This document shows, one piece after another, positions 2,261 to 62,149 of a DNA stretch of 64,000 bases. Numbering within the stretch: the stretch's first letter is position 1; every line of letters begins with the position of its first letter. Below the pieces are notes generated by a model. The model saw only the letters and a program-made list of their open reading frames with translations, did not search any database and was not told the origin of the DNA. The stretch lies in assembly GCA_977017575.1 (NCBI GenBank), contig CDRNVI010000178.1, forward strand, positions 129,755-193,754, written 5' to 3'. The stretch is from Paramoeba atlantica. Taxonomy: Eukaryota > Protista > Discosea. The translations under genes and the position numbers were made by a program.

Positions 2261-2679
2261 CCATTCCATAGCAGTTCTCTTGAGGCTGTAGTTCTGGATT
2301 GACCAATTTGTCTTTATACATTCCTTTGTCTGACTTCTTTTGGTGAAGTTTTTTTAATAATTGTTCAAAATATTCACCAACTAGTCGTTTGTTAAGAGGT
2401 TTTGCAATGGTTTGTTCTGCATTCTCCTCTGTAACATAAGTATGTTTTGCAACTGTTGATCTTTTTTCAAATGAGAATGAGGTATTTCTGTCAAAATCCT
2501 AGTGTGAACTGATTCCATGCTGTGCAAATTAATTTGTTTCTCTTTGTACATCACTGTGCTCCCCTGTTGTGTGAATATCCCTGATGAACATTTGTAAAAC
2601 TGTACAAACTGTTCTGATTCTACATGTATTCCTGTCTCTCTCATTTGAGCTCTTCTCACCCAGTTCTCACTCTGAATTC

Positions 2680-3070
2680 AAATTGTTTCCTTAATATTTT
2701 TTCTTTGTTTTATATTATCTTTACATCAATTAATTCTATGTTCTGTAACTTTTATCTATGATTTAATCTCTCTGCTGTGTCCTTTTTCTTGTGTGTTTTT
2801 GTTTTTCATTCTGTTTTGCTTCTTATCAATTCCACACTTGTTATATTTGTTGTTCCATATGAATACTCCTTTTGTTTGTTGGTAAAAGAAATAAACTTAC
2901 TTGGTTAGTTTCCTTTGTGATACATCACCAATCTTTTCCATGATTTGCTCTTGACTTTTCTCTTTCTTTTTTTTCCCTTTCTTTCTTTCCTTCACCTGCT
3001 CACTCTTTCCTTCCCCAAACTCCTGGCCACTTCACAGATTAAGAGTTTAGGCTTCCAGCCTGAGTTTTGA
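2680..3070 (+). mobile_element. Copia 5' LTR end plus PBS remnant, related to the 53801-61630 element
   Basis: 3027-3063 ccacttcaca|gattaagagtttaggcttccagcctga matches 54318-54354 ccacttgaca|gattaagagtctaggctctctgcctga. The upstream GT-rich sequence resembles the Copia LTR. Left boundary approximate. Confidence 0.6.
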
Positions 3071-5667
3071 GAAAATCTGTTTGTTGTTCTGTGAACTGAG
3101 CATCAAAATTGGAAACCATTTTTCAATTCTTGTTCTTTGTTTCAAATCAAGGAAACCAAGTTCTTTTGGTCTTGTTTTGAATGAAGAAATTCTTCTCAGA
3201 AAATTTCTTTGCACCTCTAATCCTTGTTCCCATACTTTTACACTTTAAACCTATTTGTTTTGTTTTTGGTCTTTTGTTTTTGTACTTTTGGATTGAGACT
3301 TTGTCCCTCATTGTCTCACTTTACCCTTTACATTTTGTTCATTGCTCTCAATGATCATTCTATTGTTTGTTCATCTTGTTGAATCTCTTGGTATGTTTAT
3401 TTGTTGGTTTTGCTCCTGTCTTGAAATGTTTTCAATAATTCTTCATTTTATGAAGTGCATGTCTTGTTTGTTTATTGTGTTCATAATATATTAAAAGAAT
3501 TTTTGATCTTTCTTTTGTGAAATGTTTTTCCTGTTTGGATTTTATGTTTTGAACAACAATTTTGTTTGTCATTTTTGATTTTATAGCTGTGATTAAGCTT
3601 CCCATTTTGGTTTTTGGATCTTTCTTGTAGATGATCCTGATTATTGATTTTTTAGCACTCTTGGTGTGGATAATTAACATTTTTTTGTTTGTTTTCATGA
3701 TACAGAGCTGGTTATTCTCTTTTATCCTTCTTCTTTTGATTTATGTGGACACACCATCTCTTCTATCCTCAGTGATCCTATTATCACTTATTCTCCCCCC
3801 TTCTATCAACTTTGATAAGACATCAACTTTTTAGCTTTCAGTTTATAATTTTATACTGGTGTGCACTGTTTTAAATTATATTTCTGGCAACCATCTTTGA
3901 CCTAGCACATGGTTTTTTAATAAGCACAGTTCTGATCACACCTATTTTTGTTTTTCTCCTTATGTCATGAAAAATTCATGTTATTTTTCTTGTTTCTTGG
4001 AGATTATTCTTGTATTTGTTAATGTCTTTCTTTGCCTGTCATAACACTCTGTTTTGACTCTGTTTTTGTTTTGTCCAACTGTTCTTTTGGTTCTATTCCT
4101 GTTTTATGGATTCTCTCTGCCTTTGATTTGCTCAAGATGATTTCTTGTTGATTTCCATACTTCATTTTTGTTGGTAAATCTATTCAGTCTTCTTGCTCAT
4201 TGTTTGTTTTGGTTATTTGTCTTTGGCTATGCTTTTGGAACAGCATATTGTTTGAAATTAACATTCTGGACAACTTCAGTTTATACAACACTGTTTCCTT
4301 GTATAATCTTGATTTGAGTTTTGTTTGTCAACATTTCTTCATGTTCCTCAATCTCTTCTTTGTGTTGGATATTGTGATTGTTGGTTTTATTTGAAAATTT
4401 TTGTGATTCTTTCTGTTATTTCAATTGGTCTTTGTTGATGTTCATCTCATGCTTACAAACTGCATTTTGATGATTATTTTATTGTTGATTTTGAGTTGAG
4501 CCTTGATCAAACTTTTTCTCTTGATTCAATGAAAGTTTATTATCTTTTGTATTGATTAAATGATAGTTGTGTAGTTTTAATACTCATTTTTATTTCATCT
4601 TGGATTCATGGATTTGTATTTTTGAATTTTTTGTTCCTCAACTGCCACTTCTAATTGTGAATTTTATGATTGTGGATTTGCCTGATTGAATTTATTCTTA
4701 TGTTTGATGATTTTTCATTTTATTTTATTTTCTCAAAGCTTGATTGGATTTTTCTCTCTGTCTTGATGATGTTTTTAAAAATTCCTGATATCTTTAAAGT
4801 AATTCTGGATTGAATTTATACTTCTTGAATCTGAAGGTACTCTATTGTTAACTTCTTTGAATTTTTTACCTTGTTATTTCAAATTCCCTGCCTGTGAATT
4901 TGAATTCTTATTTTTGATTGAATTCATCCTTGTATTGATTTTATTGAAGAAATAATTGATTCCATCTCCTTGTTTTTCTTGTAATAATGTTATTTTAAAT
5001 TTGTTATTCTTGGATTGATACCTTGGGATGATTTTTCTTGTTTTTTTGTTTTTGGTTGATGATGGAAATTCTCCTGATTTCCTTTTTTACTTTGAAATTG
5101 TTAGATTTTTTCCTTCTTCTTACCTTTTGTGATTTCAATTTTAAACTTTATTTTCACTTAGATTCCTTTCTTGAATATTCCTACTTGAATTTTGAAATCC
5201 ATTTTAGTGTTGGAAGAGTGTTCCATTAAAAAATTGTTTTTGTATTATTTCAGATGTACCACCCCTGAAGCTGTTTTGATTTTGGTTACTGCACTTTCCC
5301 TCAAGTTTTGACCTTTTTAATTTGATATGTTTGTTTTGAAGTTGATTTGATTGCTGATGCTTCTTTCTTGTCATTGATACTCTCTGTTCTAAGTTTCTTT
5401 TCTCTTTGAGAAATCTCAATTCACATTTTTCTCTGTTATAATTTTATATTTTTGTTTATTCTCTAGTAATGATGCTGATTTTTGAATTTGATTTGTAATA
5501 GCTTTATTTTCAACAAGTTCCATTGAGCATCTTGCACCATTTATATTCTCTAATTATTGGTTGATTTATTGGAATTAAATCTTTTCTTGGTCTTTAATAA
5601 GTTGATTTTGGATTTCCTTTGTTGATTTGATTTTGTGATTTGATGATTAATACTTTCTCTTGTTTTG

Positions 5668-30149: not shown

Positions 30150-31494
30150 AAAGAAAGAGATTAAAAATGAATGTTTTGCTCTGTCAATCAATTACTTATG
30201 ATTTTTTCTTTTCTTCTTCATGGACATTATTGCCAAAAAACCCTTTTCCTCTCTCAACATTATTGTTACTTCCTGTTTGTCTTTCAGAACCATCATATGA
30301 GAATAGTTTCTACTCTCCTCCTTCACTTTTATTATTTGATCATTTTCATTTTCAGACTATAAGAGAATTTGTAAAAACAAATAAGAGCTTAGTGTCTTGG
30401 AAAGTGGTTCATATGGACTCTCAAAACCAATAGATTATTCAAAACCAAGATGATCATATTATTCTAACAAGAAAACTGGAGAGAAAGCACTGTTGTTGAT
30501 GAGAACTTATTTTGAAACCAAATCAGTGGAGCCAGTTCCAGTTCTTTTTAAATTTTTTGAAGTTCCAAAACAAAATTCTCAAACAACAACAATTCTCTTT
30601 GATGATGTGAACAGGATTCCATTAGATCACCTCTCAGATTCAAGCTGGAAGGCTCATTTTCTTGGTGCCACTAAAGATTTTTATCAAAAATTGGCAAATC
30701 TAAGTTGTAATACCCAACAAAACCTTTTGAAAGATGAGAATTTATTGAAGAAATTGACCAGAAATGTTTATTTTAAATTGGAGAATGGCTTGAAGGATAT
30801 GTTTTGGTTGGAATTAGTTGAATCTCCTGAAGAGGTATATGAACTCTCAATTCTTCAATGTTTTATATTTATTCTATTATTATATTATCAAACAAAGAGA
30901 AATTATCAAGGATGGTGTTTGTTAATGATGGAAATTCATGTAAAGCAAGCAAATCCAATTCAGGAATATGTTCAAGCAAGTCAAACAAATGATATGATTA
31001 TTTCATTTGTGGAATCTTTTTTTAGAGGATATGTGATCTTTGAGTTATATTTCAAAAAATGAATTTCTTCAACAATCAAAGAGATATCTTCATCTTCCCC
31101 ACCTCCATCAATATTTGATAAACAGAGAGAATGCATTGAAGACATTTACAAAAAGTTTAATGTAACTGGACAGCAAATAACTCTTTCAACACAGATTTTC
31201 CGCTTGATTGAAGAATTTTGGCTCTTAATTGCTTGTGGGATAGTTTTTCATCATCACAAAAAAGACATTGGGCTTTCTTTTCTCTTTTATTTAGGATTTG
31301 GATGGGAAAATACACCTAGTTTTGGACTTACTGAGTTGGGTTACATTTGAAAACACAGTTTTGACTTTGTTGCTGGTATTCGAGCAGCAATATATTATTA
31401 TATGTCTTTGAAAAATGAAAATAGATTTTGAATTATGGGTGCTGGGTTTGTGAATTCAATATCTAAAAAAAAAAAAATAAAATTACCACCTTAA
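30150..31494 (+). pseudogene. TET-1: putative TET/JBP-like 2OG-Fe(II) dioxygenase pseudogene
   Basis: Reading through TGA at 31060, 31348 and 31429 gives ...IACGIVFHHHKKDIGLSFLFYLGFGWENTPSFGLTELGYI*KHSFDFVAGIRAAIYYYMSLKNENRF*IMGAGFVN, colinear with TET-2. The 5' end is uncertain. Confidence 0.55.
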
Positions 31495-33258: not shown

Positions 33259-34110
33259 TTGAAGAAAATCAAGAAGAGTGACATTACAGAATTTTTGTAT
33301 AGTGCTAACATATCAATATTTGATTGGTTAAAAAATAAATTGAACTTTTTTTCATTTTGTTCTCTGTTTTTGATTCTGGCAATGAAAGGGAATGAGAAAC
33401 TGCCAAAACAAACACCAAAAGAACCTCCAATCTCATTAGATGAAATTATAGAAATTGATTTCATTACTGAGAAAATTCAACAAACAAAAAAGAGGAAACA
33501 AAAAACTGTTAAGAAGTGAAGAAAATGCCAAAAAAGAGGAGTGGAAAAAACACAGCAGCTGTTGCTGATGGAGACCATTCCTGTTGATGAAGAGAGTTTT
33601 AATTTGAATGAAACAAAGTGATGGGTGAACTCTATGATTCTTCTTGAATTTGAAAAGCAACTTGATTTTGCCTTGAAAAAACAAATTTGATTTTTTCGAA
33701 TTTAGCTACCATTGCCAAAACAAATTTTCTGTAAGATTTTTTGGGAACCATTGAAAAAATTTGAAAAAGTGAAGTTTCAAGTTGATAAATCAAGACAATG
33801 TGCTCGAATCTATTCTCAAGACAATTTAAAAAAACTGGATTCTTGCTTTTTGAACTATTTTGAATGGCAAACCAAAAAGATTTTCTTGCAAAGTTCTTGC
33901 AGCAATATTTTTTTAAATGAGGAGGTAAATATTGTTCTTTATCATTGGATTGAATTTGATGTTATTCAAACTGATAAAAATTGAATAATCAAGTGTGAAT
34001 CTGAGTTGATTTTAAAATTTACAAAAAAAAAAAGTCAATTTGAATGCTGTGGAATCATTGAAGTTACAAATGCATCTGGCTTTTGTTGCACTTGAAAGAA
34101 ATTATTTGTT
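33259..34110 (+). pseudogene. ORF-Y: orphan decayed ORF, function unknown
   Basis: ORFs 33259-33519 and 33712-33984 share a frame and are joined by a few TGA/TAG stops. No motif recognised. Confidence 0.4.
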
Positions 34111-35208
34111 GAATTATTTTGAAACAAAATTAAATTTATTTTACAAAAAAATCTTGAAAAAAATGAAACTATTTTTTAGATTTATTTCCATTATTAGTAA
34201 AATGTTAAAAAAAAAAGAGGAAAAAATTTAATTAGTAAATGAAAAAATTAACTTTTTCAGTTTGTCAAGTTTTTGCTGCATTTGCCTTTGATGTAAAAGA
34301 ATTTGATTCATCTGAATTTTGAAAAAAATGGATTAATAAAAAATATTAATTGAAAAAAAGAAATATTCAAATCCAAAAAAAAAAAAATACTTGGGTTTGT
34401 GAGGATGTGTTATTACCACACATTGTTGATAGTTGGGGATTTTAAAGTGGTTGTAGGTTTGCTACTGCTGTTGATTGATATATTGGTTGTTGAGCCAATC
34501 CATAAATTTGTGAATTGCCATTTTATTGAAATTGGATTTGAGGTGAAGGATTAAAATTTTGTTGGAATTGTTGGGGTGATTTGTTGGGGTGAGACCTGCT
34601 TCCAACACGGAAGTTGTGCCTTTCAGTGCCTTTTCAGTTCCTTGAGCCTCCCTGAGCCTTCCCTGAGCTTCCTTGATGCCTTTTATCATGAGTTTTGGTC
34701 CTTTCGGAGAGCCCTGAGCCTCACAGACAGCCGCGCGCCATTTTATCGTGATTTTAGCCAAAATCACGAGATTTTTAGCGCTCTTTTTATTCAGTTTTCG
34801 CGTTCGCGTTTTTGCTTCTTTTTCTTGCCGCTTTGCCGCTTTCTGCTTTCTTTCTGCTTTCTTGTCGCTCTCTCTCTCTCTCTTTGCTTTCCTTTGTGAT
34901 CTTTTGGCTTGCCTTGCTTGCTTTCTGTTCTCTTCTTTTGTTGTCATCATCTTTTGTTGTTTTCTTCCTTCTTTGGTTGCTGTGTAGACTTGGGATTCCG
35001 ATTTGAGTTGAGTTTCGGTGATTCTGTGCTTTTCTCAGTTGTGATTCCTTTTGTTGTTCTTCTTCTTGCTTTTCTGTTTCTTTGTTGTTGTTTTCTTGTT
35101 CTGTTTGTGTTGGCTGGGGATCTTTCCCATAAAGGTTTTGATCCAGAGTTTCTGTTTCTCTTTCTTTTCTCTTGTTTTCTCTGTTGATCCTGCTCCCCTC
35201 CTCACACG

Positions 35209-44062: not shown

Positions 44063-46051
44063 GAAACTAACTTTCGTGGTTGGATAACCCCTATTGCTTC
44101 TCTTTATTGAGTTGTTTCCTTTCTTTTGTTGTTTGAGATTTGGTTGTCTTTGCTATTAATCAATTTCGAAGATTGTTTTGACTATGTGACTGGTTCGGGA
44201 TATTGGTTTCAAGAATTGCAATCCTGTTATGCTTCCTTCTGCCCTGGGAGACTGTAAATATTGTGAATGCTGTAAATATGATGAAGATTTGGGTTTACTG
44301 GTTTCCCTGGACAGAGGTCCTAAATATATCAAAACATTTTTTTTCAAGTAAGTCCCCAGCCATTGTGTTTTGTGTTTGTTCTCTTTTCTGTGTTTTGTTT
44401 TGTGTTTTGTTTGTTTTATTCTCCTGTCATCCCCCTTGGTGAGCTGCATTTTACGATTTGTTGACACCCCGAATTGATTCCTTGGGTCTTCTGCTGCTGA
44501 TTCCCTTCTTTTGATTGCTTGGTCGGAGAATTGATTCTGATTTTGTGGATTCCCATGGATTTCTTTCATCTTTTTGGACCCTGTTGAGTTTCTGGCCTCT
44601 TTTCTCTTGGTGCCTGCAACCCCACACTCTTGTTTTGTTTCAAAGGGGGAGGTGTTGGTGAGACCTGCTTCCAACACGGAAGTTGTGCCTTTCAGTGCCT
44701 TTTCAGTTCCTTGAGCCTCCCTGAGCCTTCCCTGAGCTTCCTTGATGCCTTTTATCATGAGTTTTGGTCCTTTCGGAGAGCCCTGAGCCTCACAGACAGC
44801 CGCGCGCCATTTTATCGTGATTTTAGCCAAAATCACGAGATTTTTAGCGCTCTTTTTATTCAGTTTTCGCGTTCGTGTTTTTGCTTCTTTTTCTTGCCGC
44901 TTTGCCGCTTTCTGCTTTCTTTCTGCTTTCTTGTCACTCTCTCTCTCTCTCTTTGCTTTCCTTTGTGATCTTTTGGCTTGCCTTGCTTGCTTTCTGTTCT
45001 CTTCTTTTGTTGTCATCATCTTTTGTTGTTTTCTTCCTTCTTTGGTTGCTGTGTAGACTTGGGATTCCGATTTGAGTTGAGTTTCGGCGATTCTGTGCTT
45101 TTCTCAGTTGTGATTCCTTTTGTTGTTCTTCTTCTTGCTTTTCTGTTTCTTTGTTGTTGTTTTCTTGTTCTGTTTGTGTTGGCTGGGGATCTTTCCCATA
45201 AAGGTTTTGATCCAGAGTTTCTGTTTCTCTTTCTTTTCTCTTGTTTTCTCTGTTGATCCTGCTCCCCTCCTCACAGATTGAATAGAAAGTATTTGATAGG
45301 AAGTTTGGTTTTGTGGAATTGATTGAAAATTGTAATTTGGTTGGGTTTGAGAAGATTGAGGAAGTGGAAGTTGAATTATTGTTTGTGGAGTTGAAAATGT
45401 TTCATAAAAAGTTGGTTTTTGTTGAGGAAAAAATGGGTTGGATTGAATTTGAATAACTTGAGGTATTGATGGTGGTTGATTTTGAATAAAAAGATAGGAG
45501 TTTGTTGCTCTTTCTTTGAATGGAATGGAGGTGGAATTTGATTGAAAAGACTGAAGTGGTAGTTGTTGAATTATAGATTTGTTTTGATTTATTGGATTGG
45601 AGGAAGTGGAATTAGAGTGGAATTGTTGAATGTGATCAAGTGTTGGTATGTTTGAAATCATTGGCTCAAAAGTTAGTGGATTGATGTTTAATTGTGATTG
45701 TTTCATTTTTGTTGAAGAAGAGTGGAGTATTAATTGACTGGAGATAGGTTTTTCAGGTTGTAAGGATTGGTCAGTTTCAATTGGTGAAGGAGATTGTTGA
45801 AGTTTTGGTGATTGGAGAAGTGGGGAACCTTGTGGAGATGAGGTTGCTGGTAATGAGTGATCAGTTTCCTTATTTGTGTTGGCTTTTTTTTGCTTTTTTT
45901 CATTTGGGAGGGAATTGAAAATGTAATCTTCTAAATGGTTGTGTCGTGTGGGACGCAGGGAGGGTTTTGAAGTTTGTTTCTTATTATTTTGAGGATATGC
46001 AGTTTGAGATTGCTTGGGGATCATTGAGGGAAGAGGAGAGGTTTCTTGGGC

Positions 46052-47129: not shown

Positions 47130-48339
47130 GAGAGGTTTCTTGGGCTGATTTTTCCTTCCTCTTGCGCTTTGGCATTTTCTTTCCTTGCTGAAACTCCTTT
47201 GAGGCTTTTTGGTTGGTTGATTTTTGCCAAGGGAGATGATGGTCAGTGTTCAAGGCCTTGATGAAGAGGTAATCAGAACTTGGAAAAAGAGAATCTACTC
47301 TGTTCAATTGAATCTTTTCTTTAATCAACAGTGTTGAGTGAATGAGTTCAAAAACATTCCTTGAATTGAGTGGTTTGGAGGGGTTCAACTTCTCTAAAAT
47401 TGCTTGGTTGGTTGTAGGGAAATTATTTTCTCAAATAAAAATGAAAACTTCATTCAGCAATGAATCAAGGAGTTTTTTCTTACTCAGAACCAGCAAATAA
47501 TCCTTTAGAAGTAAAAGTGGGCACAGAGTTAGTGATGTTGATGGATTCCATGGTTTATCATAAGAATTACTTCTAATGAAAAGGTTCCCTTGATTTGGAA
47601 AGGGTAAGCAGAGTTGGAGCAAGCAGGAATATTCTTATTTCCTCTGACTACAGAGGGTTTCAACTTAACCAACAAGTGGTTTCTTTTCATCAAAGATAAG
47701 AGGCCTCAAAAGGGGAGGGAAAGTTTTGTTGCTTTGCAAATTCTGTAATTTTCCAGGATTCAAATACCAAAAGGAACCTTCTTCCAGAACCTCTTCCCAA
47801 ATCCAGAACTGAGGGTAAGTTGAAAACTCACCAATTCCTGAGCTGACTTTCCAGCAAACTGATGAAAAAAAAGTAATTTCCTTTTTTGTTTGTTCACTAA
47901 AGTTGAAATATTTGTTTTTCTTATAGTCAATTTGAGGTGAGTTTGTGTCCACTTTTATTATGGTTTCGAAGGTGGGGAGACTCATGCCAACCATAACATT
48001 CACTTCAAAAAATCCATTTTGGAACCACCACAATAATTTGAGTATTCAATGTAACCTAGGGCAAAATGCTGTGTTACAATCGAAATAATTGAATCCTTTG
48101 GAAATATCAGAGACTCCAACGAGATAATTGGTGACAAGTTTGGTGTTTTTTTCAATTTTTGATTTTGTAATTAAACTGGAAAACCAACCAAAGCAACAAT
48201 CAAGAAACCTCAATAATAAACTGAACTGTTTTGAATCTCAGAATTGCAATATAAACACTTTATTGTGGAAAGGAAAAGAAGATAAAAGTGGGAAACTGAG
48301 GGAAGAAAGGGTCAAAAGATCTTTTTTATAAAAAAACTT

Positions 48340-50099
48340 TTTTTGCTCTTTCATACTGTTTTTCCTCAATTCTTGAATTTATTGAATTATTTGAATCACA
48401 AAACACAGCCTTTTTTTCCCCTTTTTCAGTGCTTTATGGCTCATAATGCATAGAGGGAAAAAAAAACCCACAAAGCACCAAAAAAAGGCAAAAAAAGGCA
48501 AAAAAAAGTCATGCACCAGTTTTTATTGAAATTTCAAAAAACACAAAAAAAACAAGCTTAAAAAAATCAAACAAGCAGCCCTGTAAATGTGCTGTGGACC
48601 ACTTCCATGGTTGACTGGAGCACCAGAAGATGAGGATAAAGAGGATGAAGAGGAAGAAGAGAAAGAAGAGGATGTGGAACCATACATCAACTGGGTGGCT
48701 CTTTGTTTTTGAGCAGTTGTTGAATTTGCAATGTAACCTTTTGCAATCTGCAAATTTTTTCAATCCCCAGCATTCATTAAGTCCAATTTCATAGCTTCTG
48801 AATTGACTATTTCTGTTGCTTCTGTTCTCCAAAATGAATGTCTACTGTAAGACACTTCTTCTTGTGGCAATTCAAGGAAATCTACCATCTTCTGGACCAA
48901 GTTTGCAATGTAGTTTCTTCCAATTGAACTCTTGTTGAAAATTTGGTTCTTTGTACTGAAACTATTCCAGAGATGAGTGTTCTTTCTGAAATCTTTTCTG
49001 TGTGATTTTTCAAGGAGACCAAGATGCTTTTTCCAGAGTTTTACAACATTTGCTTTTCCTCCATGAATAATGTAAGGGTGTGTTGTGAGTCCACCCTTCT
49101 TGTGTTGCAAATTGATCACCAAATGGTCATCTTTTAGCACCACATCTTGAACTTTTAATTGAAAAACCTCAATGGCTCTCCTCAAAGTGAAATAAGTACA
49201 AAGAGTGATTAAAGAATCTTGTTTTGCTTTGGCTTCATTGAATATGGGTGCTTTTTGACAAAGAAATTCTTTAATTTCAAGCCAAGTGAAAACACCAGCT
49301 TTCTTTTTCTTGTACTTCTTTTCAAATTTTTGCATCAACACATTCACATCATGCAATTCCTTCAAGTTCACCCCATGAGCAAAGAGACAAAATTTCTTCA
49401 CATGTGAAATTTTTGGAAAGAAGGAGCCAAAGGAAAGAATACACTTGCTGGTTTTTCCACTCAGAGGATACAAAAATTCTTTAAAAAATCGAAAAATCAA
49501 CTTCTTGGAGAAAACCACTTCCTCTTGTTGGTCCAACCAGTATTGAAATCTACTGATTGCAATTAAAAACGGTCCAACAGATGTGCTTTCCTTCAGTTGA
49601 CAAACACTTGGCTTTTTTTTGTTAAAAAACAGCACTTCCCAAGTGAGATGAGGGATGTTGATTATTAGTAGCAAATCCACTTTTTGCTTTGCTCTTTTTT
49701 CTTTCTTTCTTGAAGTTGCAGTGTCATTTTCATCATGCTTTTGTTTCACACCCTTGCTCTCCATCCTTAACAAAAAAGAAAAGAGTGACTTCTTTTTTCT
49801 TATTTTACTGTTACTTTTTTGAATTCAAATTTTTTGAATTTTCATTTCATTAAAAATAAATTGAAGGTTCAAAAAACAGAATTGAAGAAAAAACAACTTG
49901 CAATATAGCAAAAAATGTTGTTTACAACAAGTGTGCATTATAAAAACAGAATTTAACTCATTCCCTTTCTCAGCTTTCAGGTTTTTTTTATACCTTCAGG
50001 CTAGAGGCCCTCAAGTCTAAAAGAAAACCCTCAAGCTTTGAAAGGAAACAAGTGCATTATGGTTCATAAGGCACACCGGTGCAAAAACAGCTATTTTTG
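48340..50099 (-). mobile_element. Crypton-like tyrosine-recombinase element bounded by TTTTTG direct repeats
   Basis: TTTTTG at 48340-48345 and 50094-50099. The paralogous locus has a single copy (caaaaa, 12744-12749) with both flanks joined. Confidence 0.7.
48523..49773 (-). pseudogene. Tyrosine recombinase (one internal TGA at 48760-48762)
   Basis: KKAGVFTWLEIKEFL, TLRRAIEVFQLKVQDV, SRHSFWRT (HxxR-like), AGD*KNLQIAKGY (catalytic Tyr near 48734). Confidence 0.9.
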
Positions 50100-50615
50100 T
50101 GGGAAAGCAAAAATACTTTTTTTTTATTTCAACACTTCAAAAAGTTCAATTTGAAAAACTTTTTGAATTTTTTTATTGTTGAAAAATTTTAAAAAGAAGT
50201 AGTGGTTAAATATTTCAAATGAATTAAACTCCCTCTGAAAAGGATTTTTTAGTTTTATTGAAGGTTTAAAACTTTTTCTACAAAAACTTTTTTTTTTGTG
50301 GGGAAGTAAAAATACTCTTTTTTCATTTCAATACCTCAAAAAGTTCAATTTGAAGAATTTTTTGAATTTTTTTATTGTTGAAAAATTTTAGAAAGAAGTA
50401 GTAGCTAAATATTTCAAATGAATTAAACTTCCTCTAAAAAAGATTTTTTAGTTTTATTGAAGGTTTAAAACTTTTTCCACAAAAACTTTTTTTTTTGTAG
50501 GGAAGCAAAAATACTCTTTTTTTATTTCAACACTTCAAAAAGTTTAATTTGAGGAACTTTTTGAATTTTTTTGTTGTTGAAAAATTTTAGAAAGGAGTGG
50601 TGGCTAAATATCTCA
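50094..50615. repeat. AT-rich tandem array of ~200-bp units (~2.5 copies)
   Basis: Unit anchor gggaagYaaaaatac recurs at ~50101, 50301 and 50500. About 1.6 inverted units occur at 12430-12760. Confidence 0.9.
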
Positions 50616-50619
50616 AATA

Positions 50620-51834
50620 CAATTTGTGGGGCAGGCAGGCAAGGCAAAAAACTTGAAGAGTTTGAGAAAAATGGGCCACTTTCAAAACGCTCGTGAGATT
50701 TTACAAGAATTGAACATTTCTTGGAAAACTTATCAAAGCAAATCCAATCAAAAATTTGGGATTTAAAAATTGAGGGAAGTGAAGGAAACCATGGTGTTTT
50801 TGAGTTTGAAGGAAGTGGGGTTTGTTTTTGAAGCTGTCTTCTTGCACCTGATCACATGATTGCATGTTGAATGCATTCTACTTGGATCATTACTTCCAGG
50901 AGATTCCTTTCGAAGCTCAAAGAAAGGTCTTCACCTCCTTTGATTTTGCTTTTTTGACAAAAGAATTGAGAGTTAAATAATAAATGGGATCAGAAAGGTT
51001 GGTTTTGAATCTATCCAGAATTGAATGATAGACCCAAAATTTTGGAACAACTTTCAGATCAATCAGGTGGGTTTTTAAAGCACTTGAATTTATTGGTTGA
51101 GGAAAACTTTTTAAATGTCATTTCTGGGGATTTATACATTTCATCTCAGAGTGGTCATAATGACACATTTTTTTTATTCCCAGGTAGCTTCAGAAGAGGA
51201 GATTTACAAAATGTCAATTTTTCAATCTTTGCTTCTCTCTTTGAACCCCCTTCTGCCAAAATGTAAGCAGAATGCTCAGGGGTGGAACCTCATAGCTCTT
51301 GGACTTCACAAAATTCAAAACTCTTTAATGAAATGGGTTCAAACTCAACATCTAACAGATGACATGAAGAAAATTCTTTTGTCCCTTTTAATTGTATATG
51401 AGATAAGAGAGTATTGCTTGATGAAGTGGATAATTGGATTAAAAAAGAATTCAAACTTTTTTGCAGAACAAATTGGGATGTATGAGAAATTTCAAACAGC
51501 TTGGAAGGAAACAGGAAAAGATATGAGAGTTCAACTTCCAATGAAATGTACTCAACAAATTTGGATTGGAGGAGGCTGTGGAACCCTCCTCCACAAAGAT
51601 GCTTCAAACTTCGGTTTGTCATTTTACCAATATTTGGGTTTCAATTGGGGGGAAAGTGATTGTGGTGTTGGTCTCCCCAAACTTTGAATCCTTTGGAAAA
51701 ATTCACCAGAATCTGCAATGGCTATTTGTGCTTGTTGTTACTTTTACATGAGTTTGCCACTTGATTTAGGGTTGAAAATGATAGGTGTGACTTTTGTTAA
51801 TCATAAAAAAAAATCAAATCCTCTGAAAAACTAA
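50620..51834 (+). pseudogene. TET-2: putative TET/JBP-like 2OG-Fe(II) dioxygenase pseudogene
   Basis: ...QQIWIGGGCGTLLHKDASNFGLSFYQYLGFNWGESDCGVGLPKL*ILWKNSPESAMAICACCYFYMSLPLDLGLKMIGVTFVN, with HxD at 51592-51600. Several TGA stops and a frameshift in the T-run near 51170. Confidence 0.62.
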
Positions 51835-51911
51835 ATAAAAGGAAAGCAACACACAAACCAAAGCCCTCAAAAAAATTGGTTAAAGTGAAATTGATAAAAA
51901 ACTTGTAAATT

Positions 51912-53800
51912 TTATTTCTCATCACCATCTTTTTTCAAAGAAATTTCAGTTTTGAGATTGTACATTCATGTGAGGAAAAGGTCTTCCTGAGCAGCTCAAA
52001 TCAATTTTGGGTTTGTCACCACTTCACTTCTTTGATTTAAATTTGTTTGGGTTGCTCGAATTTCTTGTGGGATATCCAAAGAGGTTTGATATTGATTTGC
52101 TAAAGAATGGCTGTATCAAAAACAAAATCCAGTTGTGAGAACTTTAGTGTTCAGATTTGCAGAACCTTGTTGGCTACTCCAATAGAAGTGCATACAATCC
52201 AAGTAGTGGACCTGCTCCCCAGCTTCTGCTACCCAAGGTTGCAAATTCCCAAACTGATAATACGTATCTGTTGCATGAGCTTCCAGAATGTGGAAATAAA
52301 TTCACCAGGTGGAACCCATCTCCCCTCCCCAATCTATGAAGCTTTCCTTCCAAGAACCAATTTTTTTTTCAAAATTAATAGTGATTACTTCATGATTTGA
52401 CCCTTTTGAAGGGTCACTTGTCAGCATTTGAAAACATTCTCAAAAAATAACCCACAATGATGTTGTGGATGGTCAATTTGGATTGCAATAAAAGATTCTT
52501 TTGACATTTTCCAATACTTGCTGCATTTGAGTGCCCATGTATTGCCCCAATTTCCAATTTCCATCATCACCAACTTAGAATTGAAAAGAAATTTTGCATT
52601 TAGAAAACACAAAAACCAGCAACTTCAATGATTTGGTTTTCAATGAGTAATTCTTCTCAAATTGTTCTTTTGTGGAGCTTTTCTCATATTTTTCCTCCAG
52701 ACAAGATTTCAACAAAAGGAAAAAGGAAGGTGAAGAAGAAGAAGATGAAAAGGAAGAGGAAGAGGAAGAGGAAGAAAATGAAGATGAGGAGGATAAGAAA
52801 GATGAAGGTGAGTTCAACAATGAGGATGAAGGTGAGTTCAACAATGAGAATGAACATGAAGAGAAATCTTGAAAGTCAGCCCACCACTTTGCCATTAAAT
52901 CAATTCTCAAGATTAAATGAACTGAGTTCTTTGGTATCTTTTACTTACAAAAGTTTGATTTCCATTTGTCCTGCAATGACTCACTGTTCAATCCTTCCAA
53001 CCATTTTTCCTCTTCTTGAAATTGTATATTCTCATTAGAATATTGATAAAAAAGCAAGAAATTAAGTTCATCATGGCATTTCTGTTGAGACCTCCCCCAA
53101 CCCCAATCTGAAAGTGTACTTTTTCTGGCATCCACTTATTTTCCTTCAATTCATTTTGAATTTGAGTTTTGGCAAATTCATCAAGAACAGTTTCAACAAT
53201 ATTCATTGCAGTCTCAAATTTTGTTTCAAAAAAGCTTCACTTTAAAATGACATAATTTATCCACAATTCAAGAAATTTCATTCCATCAAATGTTTCATGG
53301 TCACAAAAAGCTTTCATCATATTTAGCAACCATTTTTATCCATTCAAGGTTTGAGGTGGGTTTGGAGGCAATTGATTCTTTTTGCTTATATTTTGTCCAC
53401 TTTCCAAAAATCTTTGCTCTTCTTCCAAATACCTTCCAAAATATCAATTTTCAGCTTCAAATTCAAAGAGAAAATCCTTCAAAAACAAAATTGACTCTTT
53501 GTTTTCAGTGATTGCAAGTAGTTCACACTGTTTTTCTTCTTCTGACAACATCCCAGGAAGAGAATATATCTTTTTTTTGTTTTCAATTTCAATATTTAAT
53601 AAACAAATTCATTCTTTCAATGGAGATGAGTAACTGCCACTTTGAGATCACAAATTTTTAAGAGTCAATTGAACTTGAATGTTGAGCTTCTGATAAACAA
53701 GATGACAAGCAGTTTTGTGAAAGTTTTGAATTGCCTCAATCTTCCCCTTAACTTGGAAAAAATGAGATGAAAAGGTATTTGCTGGGTTCTTGGGGAAACC
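51912..53800 (-). pseudogene. DDE transposase of the RAG1/Transib/Chapaev type (N-terminus continues at 61631-61810)
   Basis: ETFDGMK (~53285), HFQIGVGGGL, VHLILRI, CKISFQF, YFHILEAH (H-x4-H, ~52275-52298), WVAEAGEQVH. Stops and at least one frameshift. Confidence 0.65.
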
Positions 53801-54327
53801 TGTTAGAATATCAGTATTCTTGGTTTGAAGAATGTTTGACTTAATGGAGAACATCATTTGTGAATTCTATGATCACGAGTTATGCTATCCTGAAGCGCCT
53901 CATCTTCCTCTTTCGAATGGTGCTAGTCCCATCTGAATCTGACAACTACACACCGAGATATTGATCAATCATTGAATTGTGCCTTCAAAAATACCTTTGC
54001 CCTATTTCAGACCCAATTTGATTGCATAGTTTATTCTCCATATTCTGATCTTTCAGCCTGTGAATTTATTTGTGCTGACGTCATCTGTTGTTCCCTTCCT
54101 TAAACTTGTTGTGTCTTTGTGTCTCTTATGTGTGCTTTTATTTGTGTGTGTTTCTCTGTTTTTGCACTTGGTGTCACATTGTTAAATATGTGCTTGAAAC
54201 CTGTTCATAAATAAACACATGAGAGACTTTGTTTTTTTCACGTTTCTGGCTCTCACCATGGAATGAAGTTTGCACCTTTCTTTTCTTTTCTCAGCAATCT
54301 TCTTCCACCAAACCCCACCACTTGACA

Positions 54328-61630: not shown

Positions 61631-61810
61631 AAACCTAATGTTAAAGAAACACAAAACAAGTTTCTTTCAAGGGTTTTGATCATTTGTTCCTGCTCCACTT
61701 TTTCAACTGATCCTTGGTTTTCACTTTTTCATTTTTGTTTTTGACTTTTTTCTTCCTTCTTGAAATGAATATGACTATTCTCATCTTGAGCAAACTCAAA
61801 AATTAAATTG
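61631..61810 (-). pseudogene. N-terminal piece of the transposase-like ORF split by the Copia
   Basis: Joining across the AAACC TSD reads in frame: ...RNLFCVSLTLGF|PKNPANTF... Confidence 0.6.
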
Positions 61811-62149
61811 TTCATCTTCACTTTCTCAACAAATCAAAAACAAAACCAATGCCACAAAAGAAGGAGAAAGGTTCCACTTTTTGCTTGTTTAAAATTAAAT
61901 TGTTCTCTGAAGTTTGTATTTAAAAAAGCACTTTTTTAAAAGTCATACATTTAATTTTTTATGTACTTTAAAGGATCAAATGTCTTTTTGATTTCAAGGT
62001 TTTTTTTCAAACTTTTCTCCTGTATTTAGAAATAAAAACCCCTTTTTCTTTTAAATTAAAACAAAACCAATCAAATATTGATACATTGGTACCATACAAA
62101 AATTCTATAATGAGGGTGAGAGTAAGAGGTGAAAAGCCAAGAGGAAGAA

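Follow-up and report, generated by a model that had tools for sequence, protein, structure and literature searches.

TET-type enzymes oxidise methyl marks on DNA. We know of no case in which one of them, NgTet1, is carried as the cargo of a transposon. In fungi, TET genes are found in DNA transposons of the Kyakuja/Dileera/Zisupton, EnSpm, ESTA and Plavaka groups, among others (PMC12730594). The enzymes encoded by these fungal elements have been proposed to counter both the methylation-based silencing of repeats and their C>T hypermutation (PMC12730594). The locus analysed here lies in a window of 64 kb (C178:129755-193754) from a protist assembly of 45.7 Mb in 248 contigs. The window is AT-rich, with a G+C content of 32-41%. 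Its segment 50671-51834, which we refer to as TET-2, is very probably a pseudogene of a divergent TET/JBP dioxygenase that travelled as cargo of a 7.26-kb transposon bounded by terminal inverted repeats (TIRs).

The arrangement has much in common with the TET genes of fungal transposons and with their relative CcTet of Coprinopsis cinerea. The enzyme has one domain, measures about 350-400 aa and is embedded in a multi-copy DNA transposon with TIRs, the repeats undergo C>T decay, and many of the copies are dead. The differences from CcTet are a sequence identity of about 10%, the failure of Pfam Tet_JBP to recognise the family and the host, a protist rather than a fungus. It also differs from the fungal TET elements in the sequence of its ends (CATTACGG...), in that no DNA methyltransferase (DNMT) was detected in the assembly and in a stop codon that is common to the aligned copies. 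In the comparison with NgTet1 of Naegleria gruberi (PDB 4LT5, 5CG8 and 5CG9), the HKD motif, the distal His and the Arg/Lys position are aligned, and the spacing from HxD to the distal His, about 48-50 residues, is similar. The identity, however, is 11%, and the family possesses an additional helical insertion some 70 residues long (~173-230 in the model).

The original prediction for this region proposed that a dioxygenase of about 400 aa was hidden at 50620-51834, split over several frames, and could be read through TGA codons and one frameshift in a T-run. Under the standard code, the list of open reading frames indeed contains only fragments there. A three-frame reading placed the catalytic motifs in the frame that ends at the TAA at 51832-51834. 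From the ATG to this TAA the window gene comprises 388 codons, and the 51 nucleotides at 50620-50670 are 5' of the ATG and outside the gene. The C140b copy stays in one frame over the 1197 nt that lead from ATG to TAA, or 399 codons including the stop, from which an ancestral TET-2 product of 398 aa is predicted. The proposed length was thus close, and the proposed interval began somewhat upstream of the ATG. The HxD-x2-N, G-x-G-L-P-x-L, P-E-S, x3-P and basic-residue motifs were all recovered in frame at the places that had been assigned to them, with GL following the Asn. The proximal iron ligands are set in G-C-G-T-L-L-H-K-D-A-S-N-F-G-L-S; G-V-G-L-P-K-L is present in the same frame, and S-P-E-S stands where the family consensus is SPGS. 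The distal ligand position falls in Y-F-Y-M-S-L-P, and the basic residue, in G-L-K-M-I-G-V, directly precedes a hydrophobic strand. In a working version of the enzyme this Lys would bind 2-oxoglutarate. The coordinates of the gene, its lesions and the surrounding element are listed in the table.

Table. Features of the decayed TET-2 gene and of the element that carries it. Positions are those of the window unless a copy is named; copies are named after the contig on which each is found.
Feature	Position	Strand	Remarks
Whole decayed element copy	33282-62112		Colinear with C155 and C209 at 92-95% identity
TIR, end far from the transposase-like region	33282-33327	+	Matches a 46-nt TIR probe (beginning CATTACGG) with 5 mismatches
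Third frame, 691 codons	45276-46051 and 47130-48344; C155 copy L022:2394-4466	+ (C155 copy)	Other side of the TET gene
199-bp tandem repeat	50094-50618		2.6 units, 91% matches; directly 5' of the ATG; belongs to the element
Decayed CDS of the TET/JBP-fold Fe(II)/2-oxoglutarate dioxygenase	50671-51834	+	ATG at 50671, TAA at 51832-51834
1-nt deletion, private	50722-50723	+	G present in 5/5 other copies
In-frame TGA, private	50829-50831	+	C>T at 50829, CGA>TGA; C209 reads Arg
In-frame TGA, codon 67	50868-50870	+	Common to every aligned copy; Lys in distant relatives; ATG directly after
32-bp deletion, private	50968-50969	+	The 32 bases are present in 5/5 other copies
In-frame TGA	51006-51008	+	CGA in four copies; independently TGA in C140a
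Run of eight T with private +1 T (frameshift)	51168-51175	+	One T fewer in five other copies
His-Lys-Asp (CAC AAA GAT), proximal iron ligands	51592-51600	+	Intact in the window copy
In-frame TGA, private	51685-51687	+	C>T at 51685; CGA in C209, C155 and C154; CAA in C140a and C140b
TAC (Tyr) at the distal iron-binding His position	51745-51747	+	CAC in 5/5 other aligned copies
Lys at the 2-oxoglutarate-binding basic position	51775-51777	+	Counterpart in the alignment: Arg in the GWRIG segment of NgTet1
Remains of a second gene, transposase candidate	51915-53802	-	Convergent with the TET gene; continues in 61631-62112
Other TIR	62067-62112	-	5 mismatches; also found by the whole-genome DNA search

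About ten copies emerged when the genome was searched in six frames with the gene's largest fragment. Two of these, C209:11689-12699 and C155:43713-44723, keep an uninterrupted frame of 337 codons, to which the window gene is 95% identical. Upstream of this frame is a segment of 66 codons that starts with an ATG, equivalent to 50671 in the window. Its translation from the C140a copy matches distant relatives at colinear N-terminal positions (blastp E 1e-4 to 1e-3) and reached a profile score of 13.6 bits, as compared with 4.3 bits for the best of 500 shuffled versions. The 199-bp tandem repeat that precedes the ATG recurs in further element copies and may act as a promoter or as a regulatory array.

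The assignment of the family rests mainly on its fold and its catalytic motif. Neither the pieces of the window gene nor the open paralog nor any of 16 family members matched Pfam. For the 16 members, the Tet_JBP model (PF12851) gave no match at E values up to 10, and a six-frame scan of the genome with this model matched no member of the TET-2 family. A word-index search returned near-identical proteins only. When 1.84 billion representative proteins were searched exhaustively with the profile, 33 relatives were found, several of them with 31-43% identity; those whose contigs were looked up are located on short metagenome contigs that offer no useful context. In the 16-sequence family alignment, G161, Q217, T255, H258, D260, S267, Y271 and G273 are invariant. 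H258 and D260 are the H and D of the HKD motif, and they align with the HKD of NgTet1. Of the 15 sequences that extend over the distal position, 14 have His there, and at the basic position 13 of 15 have Lys or Arg. The distal iron-binding His is therefore a ligand that the family has kept and the window copy has lost. Against PDB sequences, the top matches of the profile were the NgTet1 entries, with E values of 0.28-0.42 that are not significant alone, and this alignment brings the HxD, distal His and basic residue into register. The Tet_JBP genes that Pfam does recognise in this genome (C3, C30, C39 and C40) belong to the same superfamily but are much longer (893-1048 codons, Pfam E 1e-35 to 1e-39). 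When their Tet_JBP domains were compared with the family by hhalign, the same residues, including the HxD and the distal His, were aligned with an E value of 0.0017 and a probability of 16%, a marginal relation. Each of these sequence-level links to TET is weak on its own.

The structural comparisons point in the same direction. An AlphaFold2 model was made for the open 337-codon paralog with the family alignment rather than for the broken window copy, and it shows a confident double-stranded beta-helix (pLDDT 82.4, pTM 0.83). In a Foldseek search of the PDB, CcTet (E 3e-9) and NgTet1 (E 1.4e-8) were followed by CMD1 and human TET2. Pairwise alignment with VIA-align yielded Z values of 20.9 for NgTet1 (226 of 265 residues), 20.5 for CcTet (272 residues), 16.4 for TET2 and 16.0 for CMD1. 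In the ESM Atlas, one neighbour cluster consisted entirely (100%) of Pfam Tet_JBP proteins. The TET/JBP identity that had been proposed from the sequence is thus supported by the modelled open paralog, for which a beta-helix is predicted and the top structural matches are all TET-type enzymes. Taken together, model and alignment support the view that the family is a divergent TET/JBP member, though it fails the Pfam model.

The TET-2 gene is the cargo of a 7.26-kb DNA transposon. The C155 and C209 loci share 7,278 bp at 99.66% identity between unrelated flanks, and the element itself spans 7,264 bp between 48-bp TIRs starting CATTACGG. The TET gene occupies positions 2437-3447 of the element, between the two TIRs. 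About 8-10 copies of the element are present, and a DNA search of the genome found about eight TIR ends. Four copies were inspected for a target-site duplication, and none was seen. In the window the element is broken into five fragments (33282-34581, 45276-46051, 47130-48344, 50261-53802 and 61631-62112) that are separated by four nested insertions. One of these insertions contains a 337-codon open reading frame at 48760-49773 on the minus strand with a weak match to Phage_integrase (E 0.028), below the Pfam cut-off.

Two further frames accompany the TET gene in the element. In C155 and C209 the transposase candidate corresponds to an open frame of 306 codons. It showed no match to Pfam, to PDB sequences, to a genome paralog or in the word search, and its single-sequence AlphaFold model reached a pLDDT of 35. 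The frame contains H-x4-H followed by Glu at +17 and +20 (C155 copy L018:8929-9546, plus strand; window 51915-52574, minus strand), and a C(2)C motif was not found in it. Among named language-model clusters, those of RAG1 ZnH2 fragments lie closest to this frame (0.92), and no alignment method produced a significant match. The H-x4-H...E pattern and the RAG1 ZnH2 similarity hint at the CACTA/Chapaev/Transib group as described in PMC12730594. The 691-codon frame has a Cys-rich N-terminal half and a tail rich in Gln, Pro and Ser, and it has no Pfam match.

The decay of the element was quantified by aligning the window copy with the C155 copy (7,286 positions). Of the 440 substitutions in the window element, 400 are C>T or G>A. 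Half of the CpG sites (50%) and about 10% of the other C had changed, as compared with 0.5% for T>C. Per site, C>T occurred about 20-100 times as often as T>C. The CpG observed/expected ratio, 0.68 in the young copy, drops to 0.08 in the window copy and to 0.18 over the whole 64 kb, and CpG sites were affected with all four 5' neighbours (31-59%). A loss of C that strikes CpG first is the classic footprint of CpG methylation.

A working enzyme of this family would bind iron through H-x-D and the distal His, and 2-oxoglutarate through the downstream Lys or Arg. It would oxidise a modified DNA base, most likely 5-methylcytosine. By analogy with the fungal TET transposons, such an oxidation may shield the element from methylation-linked silencing and from C-to-T decay. 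The substrate may of course be another one: the family could be genuine TET/JBP but act as a thymine hydroxylase of the JBP type that produces 5hmU, or as a 6mA demethylase, with a role in DNA hypermodification rather than demethylation. A six-frame scan of the assembly at E values up to 10 detected no C5 cytosine methyltransferase domain (PF00145, TIGR00675), as would be expected if 5-methylcytosine were not the target. Thymine is the substrate of JBP, CcTet acts on 6mA too (PMC12730594), and one of the top structural matches is CcTet in complex with 6mA DNA. On the other hand, DNMT genes that are split by introns can escape a six-frame search, and the repeat zone, with its CpG-first loss and its observed/expected ratios of 0.08-0.18, looks as CpG methylation would leave it. 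We therefore regard a substrate other than 5-methylcytosine as unlikely, though it is the most durable of the alternatives that we weighed, and keep 5-methylcytosine as the probable target.

A second alternative questions the family itself. A double-stranded beta-helix and an HxD...H triad are common to all 2-oxoglutarate oxygenases of this kind, the Pfam Tet_JBP model does not recognise the family, and FTO, ALKBH3 and prolyl hydroxylases are also found among the structural matches, with Z values of about 12-13. The enzyme might accordingly be an AlkB/FTO-like or prolyl-hydroxylase-like oxygenase acting on RNA, protein or alkylated bases. The best of these non-TET oxygenases, however, reached a Z of at most 12.7, and the TET/JBP structures exceed all other families by between 3.3 (CMD1) and 8 (NgTet1) Z units. 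Their alignments cover most of the model (226-272 residues), including its N-terminal part. NgTet1 supplied the sole PDB sequence matches in which the catalytic residues are aligned, and the gene is situated inside a transposon, as are the fungal TET genes (PMC12730594). An oxygenase of another family is thus quite improbable, and the TET/JBP assignment is retained below.

The condition of the window copy becomes clear from a codon-by-codon comparison with its paralogs, in which it was aligned with C209, C155, C154, C140a and C140b. Private substitutions of the window copy were C>T or G>A in 55 of 57 cases. In total it contains four in-frame stops, three private indels and the His-to-Tyr change at the distal ligand. 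Relative to C209, 38 of its codon changes are nonsynonymous, including two that create stops, and 15 are synonymous, which is what decay without constraint would produce. The original prediction had pointed out that the Tyr codon is one C>T step away from CAC, and the homologs bear this out. It had likewise located a single frameshift in the T-run, which proved to be an extra base with no counterpart in the five other copies. An intron in place of this frameshift was considered and rejected, as no GT-AG interval fits in length and phase and the other copies read straight across the T-run. The reading through TGA codons followed the right frame for the most part, but the TGAs are nonsense mutations and the stretch 50871-50968 is the sole out-of-frame part of what otherwise appears as a continuous frame 0. 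A 1-nt deletion common to a clade of copies adds to the private loss of 32 bp after 50968; with 33 nt gone in all, frame 0 is restored, which is why the gene could be read as one continuous frame.

These data bear directly on whether the copy could still work. It might be argued that TGA encodes an amino acid in this organism and that the T-run is a site of programmed frameshifting. When TGA was treated as sense, the number of open reading frames of at least 150 aa in the window rose from 33 to 128, and a public ENA protein (P0002, 429 aa) reads across the same TGAs as Trp. Removal of TAA and TAG instead gave 110 open reading frames, nearly the same rise, so that the increase is a chance effect of fewer stops in AT-rich DNA. 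The N-terminal 100 residues of P0002 read several TGA as Trp and look like the artefact of a metagenome gene caller. A code in which TGA specifies Trp is contradicted by the CGA codons of the younger copies and by the long genes that are open under the standard code, namely the Pfam-positive TET genes of the genome with their 893-1048 codons. With three in-frame TGAs aligned to CGA in younger copies, a T-run that is one T longer and a mutated catalytic His, a working gene at this locus can hardly be entertained. The window copy is a dead pseudogene whose stops arose by C>T decay and do not reflect a variant code. The hidden dioxygenase that had been predicted is thus real as a family, but the gene itself is a dead copy and transposon cargo.

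The more intact copies are themselves compromised at the N-terminus. The TGA at codon 67, with the ATG that directly follows it, is found in every aligned copy of the gene, and one T is missing eight bases after this TGA in C209, C155, C154, C140a, C153 and the window. C209 and C155 have an extra 4-nt insertion upstream. As a bridge across the stop or frameshift near codon 67 an intron was also rejected, for no GT-AG interval of fitting length and phase was found. With a stop common to all aligned copies and, in the youngest clade, a frameshift just behind it, an ATG-started frame of full length survives in none of the copies of the assembly. Even the best copies may therefore be inactive. The TET-2 family may have been already non-functional while still transposing, and the element may have gone on moving although it encoded no functional TET itself. 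That the youngest copies have an open frame of 337 codons may likewise be a sign of youth and not of selection.

The window contains a second decayed gene of this kind, TET-1, at 30150-31494, which belongs to a different repeat family. TET-1 represents a sister subfamily of TET-2, with 33-35% identity (E 1e-27 to 1e-42) and the same motifs. Unlike the TET-2 copies, the relatives of TET-1 have an ATG-started N-terminus in one frame. Compared with an open relative of 364 codons in C177 (L034:1426-2517, minus strand), 86 of the 99 substitutions in TET-1 are C>T or G>A. The lesions include CAT>TAT at the distal His, CGA>TGA at the basic residue and a change of the HxD Asp to His. Because TET-1 shows the same C>T pattern and a CAT>TAT change of its own, the loss of the distal His that it shares with TET-2 stems from two independent C>T hits, not from an ancestral trait.

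The window copy would then be one that lost the contest between the element and its decay: the gene collected stops, indels and the His-to-Tyr change, and the element around it was split by four later insertions. It is a relic without a function of its own, an ordinary dead copy of an element that is itself of moderate interest. The natural occurrence of inactive His-to-Tyr variants beside an open copy is nonetheless convenient for assays. A bolder reading, which we offer as a doubtful one, is that TET-1 and TET-2 stand for a deep lineage of TET/JBP enzymes that live on transposons and are invisible to Pfam, and that enzyme and mutator are parts of a conflict between transposon and host which builds on an unknown DNA-modification system. 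If true, that system would be an unrecognised methylase, or it would involve a modified base other than 5-methylcytosine. The arrangement of a TET gene inside a transposon, known from fungi, is now seen in a non-fungal protist and with a divergent enzyme, which suggests that this form of transposon counter-defence arose or spread more widely than known.
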